IMG/VR virus record: IMGVR_UViG_3300002514_002723 | Span: 1-7,149 of that record | Length of the DNA: 7,149 nucleotides | Direction: 5' to 3' (one strand) | Shown here: piece by piece, positions 7 through 6,721 of the stretch | Layout of the letters: every line of letters starts with the position of its first letter | How positions within the stretch are numbered: the stretch's first letter is position 1 | The notes under the pieces: model-generated | What the model was told of the DNA's origin: nothing | Seen by the model: the letters and a program-made list of their open reading frames with translations, nothing else | Databases searched by the model: none | Position numbers and translations under genes: made by a program

Positions 7-34
7 CGTGTCTCCTGTGGTTGTTGTGCTTTCC

Positions 35-63
35 ACTCTATTGCACCGTGATAGTGATGTCAA
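35..63 (-). promoter_or_regulatory. Leftward sigma70-type promoter
   Basis: Minus strand TTGACA (63-58, perfect -35), 17-nt spacer, TAGAGT (40-35, 4/6 match to -10 with T1, A2, T6 kept). Points at the SD/ATG at 16-4. Confidence 0.7.
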
Positions 64-72
64 TGACATCAC
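54..72. promoter_or_regulatory. Perfect 19-bp palindrome, candidate repressor operator
   Basis: GTGATGTCA-A-TGACATCAC: 9-bp arms with a 1-bp centre, covering the -35 of the leftward promoter, between divergent genes. Confidence 0.65.
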
Positions 73-125
73 CTCGACTGGACATGCTGAGTGATTTGAT
101 GTACTTACTTTTAAGAGGTGAGTCT

Positions 126-386
126 GTGGACATCAGAAGCTACCGAGAGAGTCGGCCAAAGTACAACACTCGTGCGGCATTCTGTCATCGCATGAACTTG
201 TTCCTTCGGCAGTGGGGTTTGAACATTTCAATCCCATATCTGAGAGACTTGGAGTCGGGACGTTCGGTCCCATCGCTTGCTCTTGCGGTTGCAGTTGAAG
301 ATGCTACCGCAGGAAAGGTTCGAGTTCGGGATTGGCCCGGATTAAAGAAACGCATGAAACAGAGGAAGAAACATGCTGCTGTCTAA
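126..386 (+). CDS. Cro-like helix-turn-helix transcriptional regulator (86 aa)
   Basis: Start reassigned to GTG at 126 (SD GAGGTG at 115-120, 5-nt spacing). ISIPYLRDLESGRSVPSLALAVAVEDATAGKVRVRDW matches the Cro/YdaS-like pattern (recognition helix, GxxxP, ExATxGxVxxxDW). Confidence 0.75.
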   Translation: MDIRSYRESRPKYNTRAAFCHRMNLFLRQWGLNISIPYLRDLESGRSVPSLALAVAVEDATAGKVRVRDWPGLKKRMKQRKKHAAV

Positions 387-636
387 GGAAGAGTTGAGTC
401 AGATTCGATCAGAGGTGGGTTCTCGCACTGCGCAATACCAGAACATAGTGCCGAGGCTGCTTCGCCACATCGCTGCGCTTCAGGCAGTCGTCGATGTGCT
501 TGAGGCTGAGGTTCAGGATGCGTGGGCCCTCGCCAAGAAAGCTCCATCCACGAAGGCCCCAGCCACGAAGGCCCCAGCCACGAAGGCCCCAGCCAAGAAG
601 GCTCCATCCAAGAAGGCCCCAGCCAAGAAGAAGTAA
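373..636 (+). CDS. Small protein with helical/coiled-coil N-terminus and histone-H1-like Lys/Ala/Pro repeat tail (87 aa)
   Basis: ATG at 373 with GAGG upstream, overlapping the previous stop by 14 nt. C-terminus is KKAPS-TKAPA-TKAPA-TKAPA-KKAPS-KKAPA-KKK. Confidence 0.75.
   Translation: MLLSKEELSQIRSEVGSRTAQYQNIVPRLLRHIAALQAVVDVLEAEVQDAWALAKKAPSTKAPATKAPATKAPAKKAPSKKAPAKKK
535..624 (+). repeat. In-frame 15-bp tandem repeat, 6 units, encoding (K/T)KAP(A/S)
   Basis: Units at 535, 550, 565, 580, 595 and 610. Units 2-4 are identical (ACGAAGGCCCCAGCC); units 1 and 5 share GCTCCATCC. Confidence 0.95.
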
Positions 637-849: not shown

Positions 850-2229
850 TTACCAAGTGCATCCAATCCGAGTGTACAGCTTCATTCGCTTCTTGGCGAG
901 TCCGCGCATCGAACCAATGTCATCAACTACATCAATGACGAGTGGTGGCTTCTTTTGTGGATGTGGGCGCATCACTCGTCCGATTCTCTGCTGAATACGA
1001 GCCAGGGCTTTGGTTGGAGTCGTCAGCACAACCGTGTCGAGAGATGGCAGGTCAAGGCCCTCATCAGCAAGCGTCGTGGCGCAGACCACCTGTATTTCTC
1101 TGTCCCTGGCTTTGTTTAAAGTCTCAGCCCGCTGCTTCTTTGTCATGCGTCCAACCAGTTGTTCTGCTGTGTACCCTCGAAATCTAAGCTCTTGAGCCAT
1201 TAAAGAGCAGTGGCTGACCCGGTCGGAAAGAACGAGCACTTGCCGACCCTCCTCGATTGCTCGAACAACTCGGCTGATAATGCGCTCATTTCGGTACATG
1301 TTGCCTACCATCTCATTGACCAGCTTTGGCCAGTCCATCGGACCTTTGGGGCCCTTCCAGTCCGTCATCAGCCACTCCACTCGGGGAGGTAGAACATGCC
1401 CGTCTTTCGCCAAGTCCGCGTTGGTGATCTCATAGACGGCGGGGCCAAGATGCCACCAGAGCATTGACGTAAGGCCGTCTTGTCTGCGAGGCGTAGCTGT
1501 AAGTCCCAGCCGGTACTTAGCTGGGATGGTCATCATGACTCGACTGAACATCTCGGCAGGGACATGGTGACACTCATCAACAATGCAAAGCCCAAACTGC
1601 TTGGCCCACTCGTACCGTTCAAGCCAAGACATTCGGTCAAGGGTTTGGAATGTGGCCACAACAACGCGGCCTGAGTCGTCTCGCTTGCCTCCCCCATAGA
1701 CGCTGGTGGTGCAGCCATCGAGGGTGGTTTCGAGCCGGTTTGTCCATTGTTCTGCAAGGTCGTTGGTGTGTACCAGGATGAGGGCCTTGGTCTCACAGGT
1801 TGTGATTCCAAAGATGCCGATTGTGGTCTTTCCAGCGCCACATGGCGCGACGATGACTCCTTCCTGGTCTTCTTTGATCCAAGAGCTAAGTGCCTCCTCT
1901 TGATATGGTCGAAGCTTGTAGCCACCAACAGGAACGAGCGGTTCTTTGACCAACGGGTAGGTGCGTTTGTCGATTATCTGGAGCCCGCTTCCATCGAGTT
2001 TGGCGTTTCGCGGGATGGCCAGCCCGCCTCCCCATGGGTGCTCAAACGGGATCTCTTGGCATGCGCTGACTCGCTCAGGGGGCATCTGTACCCACCTGCC
2101 ACGACTTCGTAGCCCTTGGGCCATTCTGTAGTCTGGGTTTGGAAGACTGTAGGATTCAGACAACTTTGCTGCGAGTTCACTCCCAGGCTGGAAGTAGTAC
2201 GCGCCTGCTCTCACACATAGATTACTCAT
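850..2229 (-). CDS. Superfamily 2 DExH-box helicase (XPB/Rad25/UvsW/ResIII-like), 459 aa
   Basis: Motifs: Q LRPYQ, I APCGAGKT, Ia LVHTNDLAEQW, Ib VATFQTL, II IVDECHH, III GLTATP, IV VLVLSDR, V TLADEGLDLP, VI QRIGRVMR. Start set at ATG 2229 (SD AGGTG, 6-nt spacing; ATGAGTAA overlap with the upstream stop). Confidence 0.93.
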   Translation of the reverse strand: MSNLCVRAGAYYFQPGSELAAKLSESYSLPNPDYRMAQGLRSRGRWVQMPPERVSACQEIPFEHPWGGGLAIPRNAKLDGSGLQIIDKRTYPLVKEPLVPVGGYKLRPYQEEALSSWIKEDQEGVIVAPCGAGKTTIGIFGITTCETKALILVHTNDLAEQWTNRLETTLDGCTTSVYGGGKRDDSGRVVVATFQTLDRMSWLERYEWAKQFGLCIVDECHHVPAEMFSRVMMTIPAKYRLGLTATPRRQDGLTSMLWWHLGPAVYEITNADLAKDGHVLPPRVEWLMTDWKGPKGPMDWPKLVNEMVGNMYRNERIISRVVRAIEEGRQVLVLSDRVSHCSLMAQELRFRGYTAEQLVGRMTKKQRAETLNKARDREIQVVCATTLADEGLDLPSLDTVVLTTPTKALARIQQRIGRVMRPHPQKKPPLVIDVVDDIGSMRGLAKKRMKLYTRIGCTW

Positions 2230-3553
2230 CGGTATCACCTGTTTTACTTAGTTCAATCACCTTAGTCTTCGTCCAAACATAAACTCTGTTCTCACCAATG
2301 CGCTTGCGGTCCTTCTTAAACCCAAGCTCTCGCAAGATCTCAGCCACACGAATCTCAGCATGTCGAGTCATGTGATTCTTCTCCAGCTTGAGGGCGTCTT
2401 CCATGAGGGTCCGCGTTGAGATCATCCCGTAGTAGTTCTGCGTATACTGGACGATCACGTCTCTCCAGGGGTCCTCCTGGCGGAAGATCTCGCTCTCCTC
2501 TTCGCGCTCCTTCTCCCACTCCTGCTCAAGCCACCATGTCGCGCCAGAGTTGTACTCAAGAATGGCCTCAGCCCAAAGCTGGTCCCGAAACTCCGCAACC
2601 CAATCGAGATCGATCTTCTTGACCTTGATGGGCCAGTACCTACGACTTCCCGTCCAGTCGTTCATGAACTGGCTGTCGTTGGTGGTTCCGGCAAACACGG
2701 TGTGCCGCTTAATGGTTACCGCTCTACGCCCATACGCTGGCCTGTAGGTGTCTTCCTGGGCACTGATGAAGGCTTTGGTTGCCGAGTTCGCTGAGCGCCG
2801 AACAGAGTCAAGCTCGGCTACCTCGTAGATCCAAGCACGCTGAATCTGCGTGTAGGCATTGGCTGAGCCAATATCGAGAGGTGTATCCGAAAAGAAGCTC
2901 TCAGTAGCCAGGGTCCTCAGCAGGCTGCTCTTGCGCGCGCCTTGGGGCCCAATCAGGATCAAGACACAGTCGGCCTTGCTGCCGGGCTTCATCGCGCGAG
3001 CAATCGCCTGAATCAACCACTTGTTGCCCATCATTCGGTTCAACTCGGTATCGTCACACCCGGTGGCCCGAATAAGCCAATCATCAGTTCGTTTGACCCC
3101 GTCCCACTTTACGCTACTGAGCCACTCTTGAAGTGGGTTGATGCCGTTCTCCTCGCCTATGAGCTTGGCGATTCCTGCAACCGTCGTGTCGGCAAACTTG
3201 ATGCCGTATGTTGCGTCAATCCATAGAGAGATCTTGGTGTCGTCGGTGTCCTTGTACTCATTGTCGTTCAAGTACAAGGCCCCATCGAACAGGTTCTCCC
3301 AGATGCTGGCCTTGTATCGACGGTCCAGGCTCAGAATCTTGTAGAGGTTGTTTCGGGACTGCTTGGGAACTCCAGTCAGGTTTCCTTGCTTGTCTCGATA
3401 CTGCTCAAGCTGCGGCAGCACAATCGGGTCTGGTTGGTCCCTACCCAACTGCTCTTCTTCGTCTTCATTCAGGTCTCCTTTGGCTTCAGCGTTCTTCAGC
3501 AAGCTCTGTAGTGATGTCTTCTCTCCGCGCAGCGTTCCGTCGATGTCAGGCAT
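2222..3553 (-). CDS. VapE/VirE-family P-loop ATPase (phage replicative helicase-like), 443 aa
   Basis: Walker A GPQGARKS, Walker B WIYEVAEL, family motifs KAFISAQEDTYRPAYGR, VFAGTTN, DWTGSRRYWPI, RDQLWAEA and DPW, then a C-terminal winged-helix-like segment. Directly follows the primase. Confidence 0.9.
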   Translation of the reverse strand: MPDIDGTLRGEKTSLQSLLKNAEAKGDLNEDEEEQLGRDQPDPIVLPQLEQYRDKQGNLTGVPKQSRNNLYKILSLDRRYKASIWENLFDGALYLNDNEYKDTDDTKISLWIDATYGIKFADTTVAGIAKLIGEENGINPLQEWLSSVKWDGVKRTDDWLIRATGCDDTELNRMMGNKWLIQAIARAMKPGSKADCVLILIGPQGARKSSLLRTLATESFFSDTPLDIGSANAYTQIQRAWIYEVAELDSVRRSANSATKAFISAQEDTYRPAYGRRAVTIKRHTVFAGTTNDSQFMNDWTGSRRYWPIKVKKIDLDWVAEFRDQLWAEAILEYNSGATWWLEQEWEKEREEESEIFRQEDPWRDVIVQYTQNYYGMISTRTLMEDALKLEKNHMTRHAEIRVAEILRELGFKKDRKRIGENRVYVWTKTKVIELSKTGDTDE

Positions 3554-3561
3554 TTTCTGCT

Positions 3562-4602
3562 TTAGGCCTCCAGCGGGACTCGGTAAACCTTGTGGTCGGG
3601 TAGGCCATCAGCAATCACTGTGGCGTATTCGTCTCCTCGGTCGTCAGGGTCGGTCGCAATATAGATTTTGGATGTTTTAGGGATTTGGATTTTTGGGATT
3701 GCTTTGAAGCCACCTGAAGCCGCAGCTACGATGGCCATCGTCATTTCTTCCGAATGCGCAGCACAGCACGCCCGGATAAAATCAGTGAGACCCTCACAGA
3801 TTAACAGTCCGGTTAGTCCAGGGACTACCTGGCCACGCATCATGCGAACCGCATCCGGGTTGGCCATGACCAACTCGCTGGCCTCATAGCGATATGGCCA
3901 TCGAGTCTTTGGGTTGATTTCCGGCACAGCAACGCTTCTTGCGTGGATGCTTGCGAACGTGCCATCAGATTCGTAGACTGGCGCGACTACCCGGTAGTTT
4001 GGAAGCCACTCCTTCCTCCACCACTCTGGCATTTGAACTCGGCCCGGTGGGGGCAGGACTCGGGCTGCTTTGCACTGGTCGAGCAGAAGGGGGGCAAACT
4101 TCCGGCGCAACAGCCACGTTGCCATGGGGTCTGCCCACTCTGGGTCGTCGTTCAGCGACTTTTCAAATGAGCAGGTGAGTCGCCATAGGTCATGTAGCTC
4201 TTCTTGTGGTGGTCGACGGTAGCCGTCGTCAACGACCCGCAGGAGGGCTTTCTTCTTTTCCAGTCCACTTGGTGCATGGGTTTCGCCTGGGCCTGGGCAT
4301 GCTCCTTGTTTTGAAAACCATGTTCGCACCTCAAGCTGTCTGCCTGATGGAAGCTCTCTAAAAGGTAACTCATGGAGCCGAAAGGCTGCGAGGTCGACCA
4401 CATCTCCTTTGATTCCGCAGCGGTGACACTTCCATGCCACCTGATCGAAGTTGACTCCTATTGGTCCTCGGTTGTCATCGGTTCCGCGAGTCTCTGAGTT
4501 GCATGCTGGGCATGGGCCAAGAGAGCGGCCCCGGCGTTTTTGTAAGCCGAGGGCTTTCGCTGCCTTGATGACTGGGAGGTCCTTCGCTTGCTGTATCCAC
4601 AT
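3562..4602 (-). CDS. DNA primase-like protein with N-terminal zinc finger and C-terminal TOPRIM domain (346 aa)
   Basis: GPCPAC...WKCHRCGIKGD zinc-binding module; TOPRIM motifs LLICEGLTD and IYIATDPDDRG. Start reassigned to ATG 4602 (SD AGGAG, 5-nt spacing). Confidence 0.85.
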   Translation of the reverse strand: MWIQQAKDLPVIKAAKALGLQKRRGRSLGPCPACNSETRGTDDNRGPIGVNFDQVAWKCHRCGIKGDVVDLAAFRLHELPFRELPSGRQLEVRTWFSKQGACPGPGETHAPSGLEKKKALLRVVDDGYRRPPQEELHDLWRLTCSFEKSLNDDPEWADPMATWLLRRKFAPLLLDQCKAARVLPPPGRVQMPEWWRKEWLPNYRVVAPVYESDGTFASIHARSVAVPEINPKTRWPYRYEASELVMANPDAVRMMRGQVVPGLTGLLICEGLTDFIRACCAAHSEEMTMAIVAAASGGFKAIPKIQIPKTSKIYIATDPDDRGDEYATVIADGLPDHKVYRVPLEA

Positions 4603-4606
4603 GTCT

Positions 4607-4752
4607 GCTCCTGGTCGTAAACCCACTTGGCCCCGATGAGGCCGCCCAGAGCGCGGAGCACTCTGAGCGACCTGACCAGGAGCCCTGTCCTCCCAAAGGG
4701 AGTGCCAAGGGGATCAACCTTGACGGGCTTTAGGTAGATACCGGATCTACCT
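4607..4752 (-). promoter_or_regulatory. Highly structured intergenic leader upstream of primase, with anti-SD helix
   Basis: Hand-folded stems: 4752-4745/4739-4732 (8 bp), 4729-4725/4685-4681 (5 bp), 4724-4718/4710-4704 (7 bp), 4702-4698/4694-4690 (5 bp), 4673-4658/4654-4639 (16 bp with 3 G:U), 4683-4674/4616-4607 (10 bp, covers SD). Confidence 0.65.
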
Positions 4753-4759
4753 GATTGGA

Positions 4760-5071
4760 TCAAGGTCCAAGGACAACGCCCTCGGTTTGATGGTCTTCGC
4801 ATGAGATTGAGTAGTAAAGCCGCATGTCCGGTGTAATGGTCAAGACCATCTTGAGCCCCGTGTTTGCGTAGACCTTCTTGGTGTACAACGCCAGAGAATC
4901 TACTGTTGGTGGGGGTCTCTTATGGTTCAACTGCTGCCAGAGATGCGAGTACCCGGTCTCAAGAATCTTCGCGGCTGGCCGGACCTTGCCTCCCAAGGCC
5001 CGGACCAAGCTTGCGAGAGCATCGTATGTGTCCACACGAAGCTCCGGTGGTTGTCGTCTTCCCTTTGCCAT
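4760..5071 (-). CDS. Putative HTH (XRE-like) DNA-binding protein (103 aa)
   Basis: Start reassigned to ATG 5071 (AAGGGG SD, 10 nt after the upstream stop). VRPAAKILETGYSHLWQQLNHKRPPPTVDSL fits an XRE-type HTH pattern, followed by a beta-rich C-terminus. Confidence 0.6.
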   Translation of the reverse strand: MAKGRRQPPELRVDTYDALASLVRALGGKVRPAAKILETGYSHLWQQLNHKRPPPTVDSLALYTKKVYANTGLKMVLTITPDMRLYYSISCEDHQTEGVVLGP

Positions 5072-5081
5072 CGGTTCCCCT

Positions 5082-5579
5082 TTACTTGGCTGCCTCTGTC
5101 TCTGAGGCGTTGTCTTCATCTTCATCAGCGACCAAGACCGGCTTGTGAACCGCCTCGCGCACCTGTGGCACGAAGGTGATGTTGCCGTTCTTCTGGATCT
5201 TAGGAAGCTTCTGGAAAAGCTCCTCGTCGATGAGGGCAAGCGCACCAGAGACCCCGCTCTCCTTCAGCAGGTTCGCATCAGCGTCCTTGCCAAGCTTGAT
5301 GGCTTCCTGAATAGAGTCCGCAATCATCCGTGCCGTCTGGGGCCCGGTGATGCCGGAACGCTTCAGGAAGATAGCCAGGGCAAGCTTCCAGGGAATGCGG
5401 CTTGTGCCCTTGGAGTCGAATGCCTCGCCTCGCTTGAGCAGGCCCTTGACTCGAATGAGCATATCGACCTCAGCCTGAGAGCCGTTAGCGATAGCCTTGC
5501 GGGCCGCTTCTGACTCCTTGGTCGAGATGGTCTTCATGATGGCAACGATTTCTTCTGGGGTAAGGTTGAGATCTTCCAT
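5082..5579 (-). CDS. Hypothetical protein with acidic C-terminal tail (165 aa)
   Basis: Strong SD AAGGAG, ATG start, GC-ending codon bias. Ends ADEDEDNASETEAAK. No family recognised. Confidence 0.8.
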   Translation of the reverse strand: MEDLNLTPEEIVAIMKTISTKESEAARKAIANGSQAEVDMLIRVKGLLKRGEAFDSKGTSRIPWKLALAIFLKRSGITGPQTARMIADSIQEAIKLGKDADANLLKESGVSGALALIDEELFQKLPKIQKNGNITFVPQVREAVHKPVLVADEDEDNASETEAAK

Positions 5580-5722: not shown

Positions 5723-6232
5723 TCAGGACGGGAACCACCGATAAAGGCGAGTCCCGTTGATCATCATCCGCTTTGACTTGTAGCCCATCTTTCGGAGCGC
5801 GGCAGCAATCTTCATCTCAGTCGCGCGCTGTGACGTGCTCATCCCCTCGGGGTCTATCGCTTCACCTATGCGGTCTGTCGTGACCTTTGTGCCGTCGTTT
5901 CGCTTTGCATTGTCGTCCAGCCACTTTGAGATAGCATCGAGATATTTCTTCTCGATATGGGTTTCTCTCTTCTTGCGTGGCGCTTTCGGTGATGATGCTG
6001 CGGCGGCAACAAGGCCAGAGTAAAGCTCCCACCTTGTTGGTGTTATGCCGTACCTGCCCGTCAAATAGACCGAGATGTTAGCCAAGCCCTCTTCATTCAG
6101 CTTTTCTCCGTTGTGACTTAGTTTGCCATTAGAGGTCGTTTTCAGCTTCCCCTGTAGTCGCGAGTCGTGGCGAGCAGCCAGGTAGACTGCATGCCCACCC
6201 CCTGCCTCTGATATCTTGTGTTCGTGCGACAC
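5723..6232 (-). CDS. Putative DNA-binding protein; apparent ATPase-less paralog of the VapE-family protein (169 aa)
   Basis: AAGGAG, 5 nt, GTG start. N- and C-terminal halves align by eye with the N- and C-terminal domains of 2222..3553; no Walker motifs. Confidence 0.7.
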   Translation of the reverse strand: MSHEHKISEAGGGHAVYLAARHDSRLQGKLKTTSNGKLSHNGEKLNEEGLANISVYLTGRYGITPTRWELYSGLVAAAASSPKAPRKKRETHIEKKYLDAISKWLDDNAKRNDGTKVTTDRIGEAIDPEGMSTSQRATEMKIAAALRKMGYKSKRMMINGTRLYRWFPS

Positions 6233-6256
6233 TGTTTCTCCTTACTGTTGAGGTCG

Positions 6257-6721
6257 TTACCCGGCAATAGCGAGTGCTGGGCGTTCTCGGTAGATGTGGT
6301 ACACGGGGCGCGTGACATCCAGCATGGAGCGGATGCACGCCAGTTGAACCAGTTGCCCCAGCTTCATGATGCTGAGCGGAATGCTCTTCCACAGCAGCGC
6401 CCCTGATATGGGCTTTCGGTCTTTCCGTGGGCGTGCCGCAAAGCTTACGGTGACCGTCTTGGAGTCCAGGCCGCTCTGGCACGGAAATGGTTGGCGGATC
6501 TCAATCCTGGCCCAGGACGGGATGTCGTATGTCTTGAGCACTTCACGAAGTGAGGGCTCCAGATCAGAGAGCCCAAGCGCCCTCCGCATCTCGTTTACTG
6601 GGGTCACTCTCCATCCAAGCTTGTAGCTGAACTCCAGCCTTCGCTCCGTGATGCCGGTGAACTCAATGTAGTGTTTGAAGTCCCGGCCTCCGGTGTATTT
6701 GGCAATCATCTCCGTCTCCAT
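6257..6721 (-). CDS. Hypothetical protein (150-154 aa)
   Basis: Long ORF co-oriented with its neighbours and filling the gap. Start is ATG 6721 or ATG 6709 (the latter has GGAG 6 nt upstream). No motif recognised. Confidence 0.7.
   Translation of the reverse strand: METEMIAKYTGGRDFKHYIEFTGITERRLEFSYKLGWRVTPVNEMRRALGLSDLEPSLREVLKTYDIPSWARIEIRQPFPCQSGLDSKTVTVSFAARPRKDRKPISGALLWKSIPLSIMKLGQLVQLACIRSMLDVTRPVYHIYRERPALAIAG

Follow-up and report, generated by a model that had tools for sequence, protein, structure and literature searches.

What can a relative of a replicative helicase do without the helicase motor? The question is raised by a 169-amino-acid (aa) protein, which we call mini-VapE, encoded in the window analyzed here, the entire 7,149-bp IMG/VR contig IMGVR_UViG_3300002514_002723, alongside a full-length VapE-type helicase of superfamily 3 (SF3). 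A preliminary description, drawn from the DNA letters alone, held that mini-VapE keeps both domains flanking the motor of this VapE and lacks the motor itself, and profile, fold, selection, and co-occurrence evidence all agree with that view. In terms of the VapE-type ring, mini-VapE keeps the top tier and the bottom tier and lacks the one in between. Since the ATPase core that it lacks is the defining feature of the VapE family, we regard it as a derivative of that family and not as a member. The features used in the comparison are as follows.

5723..6232, minus strand: the mini-VapE gene, 169 aa, with a GTG start and a TGA stop (from the open reading frame, or ORF, list and the sequence; ratio of nonsynonymous to synonymous substitution rates, dN/dS, 0.107; family alignment A3)
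6238..6243, minus strand: Shine-Dalgarno sequence AAGGAG with a 5-nucleotide (nt) spacer to the mini-VapE GTG (read directly from the sequence)
5996..6205, minus strand: mini-VapE N-domain, aa 10-79, alpha-beta-beta-alpha-alpha (hhalign, shuffle control, and secondary structure in the AlphaFold2, or AF2, model)
5954..5995, minus strand: mini-VapE linker, aa 80-93, disordered, in place of the ATPase core (predicted local distance difference test score, or pLDDT, <50 for residues 83-90)
5726..5953, minus strand: mini-VapE C-domain, aa 94-169, a winged helix (BLASTP, hhalign, AF2, Foldseek)
2222..3553, minus strand: full-length VapE-type SF3 helicase, 443 aa (PF05272 at E 4.6e-76; PHROG DNA helicase/primase families)
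3149..3364, minus strand: VapE N-tier domain, aa 64-135, counterpart of the mini-VapE N-domain (hhalign, AF2)
2477..3148, minus strand: VapE P-loop ATPase core and the helices after it, aa 136-359, which mini-VapE lacks (Pfam VapE-like_dom over residues 145-355)
2264..2476, minus strand: VapE C-terminal winged-helix domain, aa 360-430, counterpart of the mini-VapE C-domain (BLASTP, hhalign, AF2)

Two outer tiers of a VapE ring in one small protein

Relatives of mini-VapE were collected at two depths. A word-indexed search returned only four, while a profile run exhaustively against 1.84 billion cluster representatives returned 39 proteins, about 22 of which span both halves of the query. Those ~22 proteins, aligned with close relatives, make up the 23-sequence alignment A3, and the final hhalign comparison set A3 against a 37-sequence VapE alignment, A2.

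At the C terminus, BLASTP aligned mini-VapE residues 136-166 with VapE residues 397-427 at 12/31 identical positions (E 2e-5), which reproduces exactly the alignment first proposed for this part of the protein. Profile comparison widened the match to mini-VapE 94-169 against VapE 360-430 (probability 97-99.2%, P down to 1e-19), the comparison of A3 with A2 giving 99.2% and P 1e-19, and a hidden Markov model (HMM) of the mini-VapE C-domain matched VapE C termini at E 1e-15 to 1e-18. In the AF2 model, this domain is composed of helices 95-107, 119-126, 128-133, and 135-148 and strands 151-158 and 161-168 (pLDDT 71-90 by 10-residue block), and it has the form of a winged helix, a helical bundle followed by a beta-hairpin wing. 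The elements of the VapE C-domain (helices 362-373, 380-387, and 397-409 and strands 413-419 and 422-428) agree with those of mini-VapE in the hhalign register. Foldseek matched mini-VapE to winged-helix domains of DnaD-N, MarR/PerR, and KAT6A WH, all at E >0.05. The positions conserved in mini-VapE and in VapE coincide in the recognition helix and the wing (K141/R402, G150/G411, R155/R416, R162/R423, and W166/W427). Mini-VapE has a net charge of +12 and an isoelectric point (pI) of 9.9, with conserved basic residues in helix and wing. Judged by sequence comparison, the mini-VapE C-domain is homologous to the winged-helix C-domain of VapE. An impression from an early hit list, that foreign VapE C-domains resemble mini-VapE more than those of its resident clade do, was discarded, because the deeper profile matches the resident clade at the E values given above.

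The N-terminal relationship is invisible to BLASTP, which gave no N-terminal match between mini-VapE and VapE. With five family sequences only, hhalign gave a borderline probability of 21-48%, and with the 23-sequence profile it aligned mini-VapE 7-72 with VapE 63-127 in the same register at a probability of 91.6% (P 8e-7); this is also the register of the preliminary alignment of mini-VapE 16-63 with VapE 70-118. The match is significant against controls as well. Its score of 39.9 compares with 10.9 ± 2.1 (maximum, 17.9) when the columns of the VapE N-terminal alignment were shuffled 120 times (z, ~14) and with 12.6 when that alignment was reversed. A plain HMM of the mini-VapE N-domain weakly matched about 40 VapE proteins, always just before the ATPase core, and in two longer fused VapE proteins it fell at the same pre-core place (residues 324-379 and 361-423). 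The AF2 elements of the mini-VapE N-domain (helix 12-22, strands 30-32 and 38-40, and helices 47-61 and 67-79) coincide in the hhalign register with those of VapE (helix 67-76, strands 84-87 and 93-95, and helices 102-116 and 122-135). The mini-VapE N-domain, which is the most conserved part of the mini-VapE family, is homologous to the VapE N-tier domain.

Between these two domains, mini-VapE has nothing that corresponds to VapE residues 136-359 (224 aa), which comprise the P-loop core and two long helices that follow. The PF05272 model VapE-like_dom gave no match to mini-VapE at E values up to 1, against 4.6e-76 for the neighboring VapE. Similarly, hhalign reliably aligned nothing in mini-VapE to VapE 136-359, where AF2 shows only the disordered linker. 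The earlier suggestion that a short basic linker replaces a core of roughly 220 aa is thus right about the replacement, 224 aa giving way to ~14 residues (~80-93), but the basic charge is lineage specific, since linkers across the family are 8-19 aa long with net charges from -3 to +5.

The overall models point to the same ring. The pLDDT values are 83 for mini-VapE and 82 for VapE. The top PDB fold match of mini-VapE in Foldseek is 7pds (probability 1.0, root mean square deviation 2.2 Å over 81 columns lying in either or both of the mini-VapE domains, E 0.05), and matches in a viral structure library were weak and in the same direction. The closest solved relative of the window VapE is a chain of the same entry, 7pds_A (profile E 1.5e-63), from Rep1 of the Staphylococcus pathogenicity island (SaPI) SaPI1. 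DNA-bound Rep1 is a three-tier ring of N-terminal domain, ATPase, and C-terminal domain (PMC9371898).

Mini-VapE is a real, maintained, and intact gene. Its description as a gene with a strong Shine-Dalgarno sequence and an intact frame that is maintained rather than decaying stands, with AAGGAG 5 nt from the GTG and a dN/dS of 0.107 for the whole gene, measured against an 85%-identical copy in the related contig L012 (contigs of our collection are numbered with the prefix L). In the same comparison, the N-domain and the C-domain gave dN/dS values of 0.11 and 0.15, so both domains are under purifying selection; the values for neighboring genes were 0.039 for VapE, 0.081 for the primase, 0.048 for the superfamily 2 (SF2) helicase, and 0.22 for a 165-aa gene. 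We recovered 47 distinct intact copies of mini-VapE at 22-100% identity, and the homologs are intact, not frameshifted.

Pairing with VapE and diversity of the family

Contigs found through mini-VapE carry the same module, VapE included, at 52% (L001/L002), 40% (L004), 34% (L007), and 25% (L097) identity. For a reciprocal test, contigs were fetched through VapE alone, and their six-frame ORFs were scanned with the mini-VapE domain HMMs; the 60 in which the sequence upstream of VapE ran to at least 3 kb counted as testable. A two-domain mini-VapE was present in 52 of these 60 loci and a long-form variant in 2 more (L088 and L090), so that the gene co-occurs with full-length VapE in 54/60 testable contigs. 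All minis in VapE-anchored loci (53/53) lie upstream of VapE on the same strand, at a median gap of 2.1 kb and a maximum of 8.6 kb. Three contigs (L078, L083, and L087) carry fused primase-VapE ORFs (9119-11209/11227, 697-703 aa), with no mini-VapE within ~9 kb upstream or 0.3-6 kb downstream; the absence of mini-VapE in these fused lineages may be a single evolutionary event.

Over 54 loci, pairwise identities of mini-VapE and of VapE are strongly correlated (Mantel r = 0.95, P ≤0.0002), with mini-VapE diverging 1.5 times faster. This correlation indicates that the split between the two is older than the radiation of the clade and that the pair has been coinherited. Mini-VapE would then have a single origin, most simply an internal deletion in a duplicated VapE gene before the marine phage clade radiated, and would since have been inherited with VapE as a member of an early replication operon.

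The mini-VapE family is known from uncultured marine phages, with identities down to 22-25% and longest contigs of ~60-75 kb. No family in Pfam, PHROGs, NCBIfam, or PADLOC covers mini-VapE, no homolog was found among 50,697 cultured and deposited phage genomes by near-identical DNA or tblastn searches, and a PDB sequence search with the family profile returned only noise, from the tail of the long forms. The majority consist of the two domains and nothing more, at 165-172 aa. Among 47 distinct relatives, 10 end in a strongly acidic C-terminal tail of 63-283 aa whose net charge lies between -10 and -45. Long forms, of 369-455 aa, have in addition an acidic stretch, a second and weak winged-helix copy, and a conserved C-terminal 'LEWDAEE.IW' module; they are located at L006 1131-2498, L010 3348-4676, L081 992-2338, L092 2836-4257, and L088 672-1778, the last of which has lost the first winged helix and kept the remainder. 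N-domain-only and C-domain-only proteins also occur. Among variant proteins, P0160 (226 aa) has the N-domain helix segment three times in tandem, P0147 (203 aa) has the C-domain twice, and P0143 (208 aa) lacks the C-domain and carries 83 extra aa in front of the N-domain.

The replication operon

Nearly the whole window is occupied by a single minus-strand operon, which reads in the direction of transcription as a 56-aa ORF, a 154-aa gene, mini-VapE, a 165-aa gene, a gene of ~103 aa, primase, VapE, and SF2 helicase. Its other principal genes are as follows.

3562..4626, minus strand: Zn-ribbon/Toprim primase, 354 aa, in the same operon (PHROG_47 DNA primase at E 3e-11; Toprim_2 at E 9e-4, below cutoff; conserved synteny)
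850..2238, minus strand: SF2 DEAD/ResIII helicase, 462 aa (ResIII at E 4.6e-32; Helicase_C at E 9.5e-20)
5082..5579, minus strand: conserved 165-aa gene between mini-VapE and the primase (syntenic 160-182-aa gene in L001 and L004; dN/dS 0.22)
6257..6721, minus strand: conserved 154-aa gene immediately upstream of mini-VapE (syntenic 150-aa gene in L001-L003)

The 154-aa gene stops 24 nt before the start of mini-VapE, and neither it nor the 165-aa gene has a family match in Pfam, PHROGs, NCBIfam, or PADLOC. The last 17 nt of VapE (2222-2238) are shared with the SF2 helicase, which starts with GTG, and 8 nt separate the primase stop from the VapE start; this overlap and spacing suggest that primase, VapE, and SF2 helicase are translationally coupled. 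A mechanically called ORF of 161 aa (4760..5245, minus strand) overlaps the 165-aa gene. The true gene within it is probably 103 aa long, starting at the ATG at 5071 with AAGGGAG ahead of it, and this version (5071..4760) agrees with a syntenic 101-aa gene in L001. Scans of the window for iterons and tandem repeats, for shifts in composition, and for promoters, terminators, and RNA families gave no mark of an origin or regulatory site near mini-VapE.

Two small genes lie on the opposite strand at 21..636 (plus strand), one of 121 aa that matches HTH_3 weakly (E 0.011) and one encoding an 87-aa repeat protein; comparable inverted pairs follow the SF2 helicase in L001 and L004 (100 plus 86 aa and 71 plus 81 aa). 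In the 87-aa ORF (373..636, plus strand), the C-terminal half derives from a 15-bp tandem array at 525-630 (6.6 copies, 88% matches) that encodes lysine-rich PA(T/K)KA repeats resembling the tails of histone H1 or HU-like proteins, and its match to the NCBIfam Rv3852 family (E 7.5e-5) is far under the cutoff. The wider module in L001, L004, and L014-L016 runs from primase, VapE, and SF2 helicase to a YqaJ exonuclease and a RecT recombinase, and a T4 endonuclease V-like gene (Pyr_excise) is present in several related contigs, as are paired DUF2589 genes. Neither integrase nor partition genes are annotated in the gene tables of the related contigs examined.

Candidate functions and known counterparts

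Mini-VapE probably helps or controls the start of phage DNA replication. How it might do so can be framed by its solved and characterized relatives. SF3 helicase-initiators of the VapE, P4-alpha, and D5 types are described as self-loading, and the winged helix in the C-terminal domain of Rep1 recognizes ori iterons and is needed for helicase activity (PMC9371898). P4 alpha, which combines a primase, an SF3 helicase, and a C-terminal origin-binding winged helix (PDB 1ka8), has an arrangement like that of Rep1 (PMC2777425).

Our preferred reading, held tentatively and with slightly less than even confidence, is that mini-VapE is a motorless VapE derivative that acts as an origin-binding or assembly partner of VapE. 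We propose that it binds origin DNA and contacts VapE because its C-domain is homologous to an origin-binding domain, its N-domain is of the kind that builds the N-tier, it is basic, and it shares helix and wing positions with VapE. The basic winged helix would bind the replication origin or DNA close to it, like its counterpart in SaPI Rep and P4 alpha, and the N-domain would make homotypic contacts of the VapE N-tier kind. Mini-VapE would then mark the origin and nucleate or stabilize VapE assembly there, as an assembly or loader-adaptor subunit, and the acidic tails of some relatives may be an extra recruitment handle. Acidic tails recruit partners in SSB, T7 gp4, and T7 gp2.5. As to the direction of its effect on replication, we lean toward helping over restraining, because mini-VapE is near-universal in the early replication operon, because the gene tables examined annotate no integrase, and because of the acidic tails; the DnaG precedent described below leans the same way.

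Several observations weigh against a role as origin-binding or assembly partner. VapE retains a winged helix and thus has no obvious need of a separate origin binder, and the function of the N-terminal tier is unknown even for SaPI Rep (PMC9371898). Apart from the coding 15-bp array at 525-630, the 7-kb window holds no iteron-like repeats or ori, in a genome that is probably ~70 kb. The mini-VapE of the window has no acidic tail, its protein ending one residue past the winged-helix domain. Despite ample flanking sequence, mini-VapE is missing from L085 and from L078, L083, and L087, the contigs whose VapE carries a fused primase domain at its N terminus. Finally, a covariation test, which might have tied both winged helices to a single DNA target, asked whether the recognition helix and wing of mini-VapE are more like those of the resident VapE than like those in other genomes; it reached P 0.004-0.014 in seven lineages, for a subregion chosen post hoc, but was not replicated when the same test was run on 10-21 independent loci (P 0.13-0.56).

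A more specific proposal, which we consider doubtful, is that mini-VapE is an origin-licensing subunit that either forms its own two-tier motorless ring or coassembles with VapE, so that recognition and unwinding are split between paralogs. Were this true, the pair would be a phage-scale analogue of the division of labor between initiator and helicase, in which the presence of mini-VapE tunes when and where the SF3 ring closes; were the coassembled ring dead, this would be the first phage replicative helicase with a ring-poisoning paralog encoded in a gene of its own.

In a different account, mini-VapE would be a dominant-negative or copy-control regulator that competes for origin sites through its winged helix or inserts into or caps VapE rings through its N-tier domain. 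Having no ATPase, it would limit initiation, time a switch in replication mode, or exclude related phages or satellites. Identical domain homologies support such a brake, and since SF3 ATPase sites lie between subunits, as shown for the nucleotide sites of the SaPI Rep ring (PMC9371898), a motorless subunit should poison the ring. Lineages that lack mini-VapE replicate with VapE alone, which makes it dispensable in principle. The known analogues, HSV-1 (herpes simplex virus 1) OBPC/UL8.5, papillomavirus E8^E2 and E2-TR, and P4 cnr, are all negative regulators, and for that reason we give this account substantial weight while judging it unlikely. A co-transcribed, near-universal inhibitor would better suit a plasmid or temperate life, and the gene tables list no integrase or partition genes; acidic recruitment-type tails would be unexpected in a simple competitor, and no homology of mini-VapE to P4 Cnr was found.

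An exapted transcription factor is improbable. On this account, the winged helix would bind early or middle promoters, the N-domain would oligomerize, and the link to VapE would reflect ancestry plus linkage; since linkage alone would yield coinheritance, the coinheritance of mini-VapE and VapE does not discriminate here. Mini-VapE is small and basic, its C-domain fold matches the winged helix-turn-helix regulators MarR, PerR, and PadR, and in L007 and L008 it heads a rightward operon adjoining a divergent gene. However, the same residues are conserved in the VapE C-domain and in mini-VapE, and conservation within the family is highest in the N-domain, an argument that a surface for a specific partner has been kept.

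Less probable still is a decoy with an antidefense or antisatellite role, which would mimic exposed VapE surfaces to absorb a host sensor that detects replication proteins of phages or disturb a satellite VapE-type Rep: such Reps are typical of satellites (SaPI, PMC9371898; P4) and the architecture displays VapE surfaces without activity, but we saw no PADLOC or other defense-related signal, and the gene holds a conserved position within the replication operon and not in a variable accessory region. That there is no real feature at all, only a similarity due to chance or the decaying remnant of a VapE duplication, is hardly credible, for although BLASTP by itself picks up only 31 residues and the 11/49 N-terminal identity of the preliminary alignment is within chance for one pair, it is refuted by selection (dN/dS 0.11), by the 47 intact copies, by shuffled scores ~14 standard deviations below the real one, and by the AF2 model.

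Whichever direction its effect takes, the mini-VapE family amounts to a natural dissection, in which the two outer tiers have been under selection without the motor throughout the existence of the phage clade. If mini-VapE binds VapE or the origin, it offers a direct handle on the role of the N-tier, which has none assigned in helicases of this type (PMC9371898), and some "self-loading" helicases would have a paralogous helper or brake. A testable role is thereby offered for a gene that family databases leave unannotated and that 54 of the 60 testable marine phage contigs carry.

Compared with known systems, a motorless relative of an initiator helicase is a known theme, whereas a separate gene of N-plus-C architecture stably paired with a full-length SF3 enzyme is, as far as we found, undescribed. 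Literature searches yielded no description of such a protein. The preliminary statement that no described example was known therefore stands, as far as those searches reach, for homologous or N-plus-C cases but not for functional analogues, which exist in HSV-1 OBPC/UL8.5, the papillomavirus E2 repressors, and P4 Cnr.

P4 Cnr controls replication copy number (PMC8628076), and its gene is the immediate upstream neighbor of alpha within one operon. Like mini-VapE, it is a small partner encoded upstream of a helicase-initiator; unlike mini-VapE, it is a single small domain and not an N-plus-C helicase derivative. Sequence comparison revealed no similarity of Cnr to alpha or of either of them to the mini-VapE family, and Cnr (DUF5375) was rejected as a homolog, with an hhalign probability of 0.1% for A3 against P4 ORF106 and no DUF5375 Pfam match. 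PMC7184758, citing Baradaran 1994, describes HSV-1 UL8.5 (OBPC) as a form of the origin-binding helicase UL9 that is truncated at the N terminus. OBPC resembles mini-VapE in being motorless, in sharing the origin-binding end of the initiator helicase, and in being expressed alongside it, but it arises from an internal start in the same gene, consists of the C-terminal part only, and is nonhomologous, UL9 being an SF2 and not an SF3 enzyme.

Papillomavirus E8^E2 and E2-TR are shortened proteins that keep a DNA-binding and dimerization domain, lack the effector domain, and restrain replication. They differ from mini-VapE in deriving from the loader E2 and not from the helicase E1, in being made by splicing or from an internal promoter, and in being unrelated in sequence. 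The C-domain of DnaG resembles the N-domain of DnaB and is a precedent for a partner module that resembles a helicase N-domain and docks on the N-tier collar, although it has another fold, belongs to another family, and is fused to a primase and not to a DNA-binding winged helix. The long acidic C-terminal tail of SSB-type recruiters is absent from the mini-VapE of the window and is present only in the tailed minority of its relatives.

The nearest counterpart is SaPI Rep. Mini-VapE differs from it in lacking the ATPase tier and hence helicase activity, in being a separate gene beside a complete VapE, and in having no adjacent iterons found in the window. In SaPI Rep1/PriRep5, the N-tier and the C-terminal winged helix are homologous to the two domains of mini-VapE, and it is here that mini-VapE finds its best fold match.
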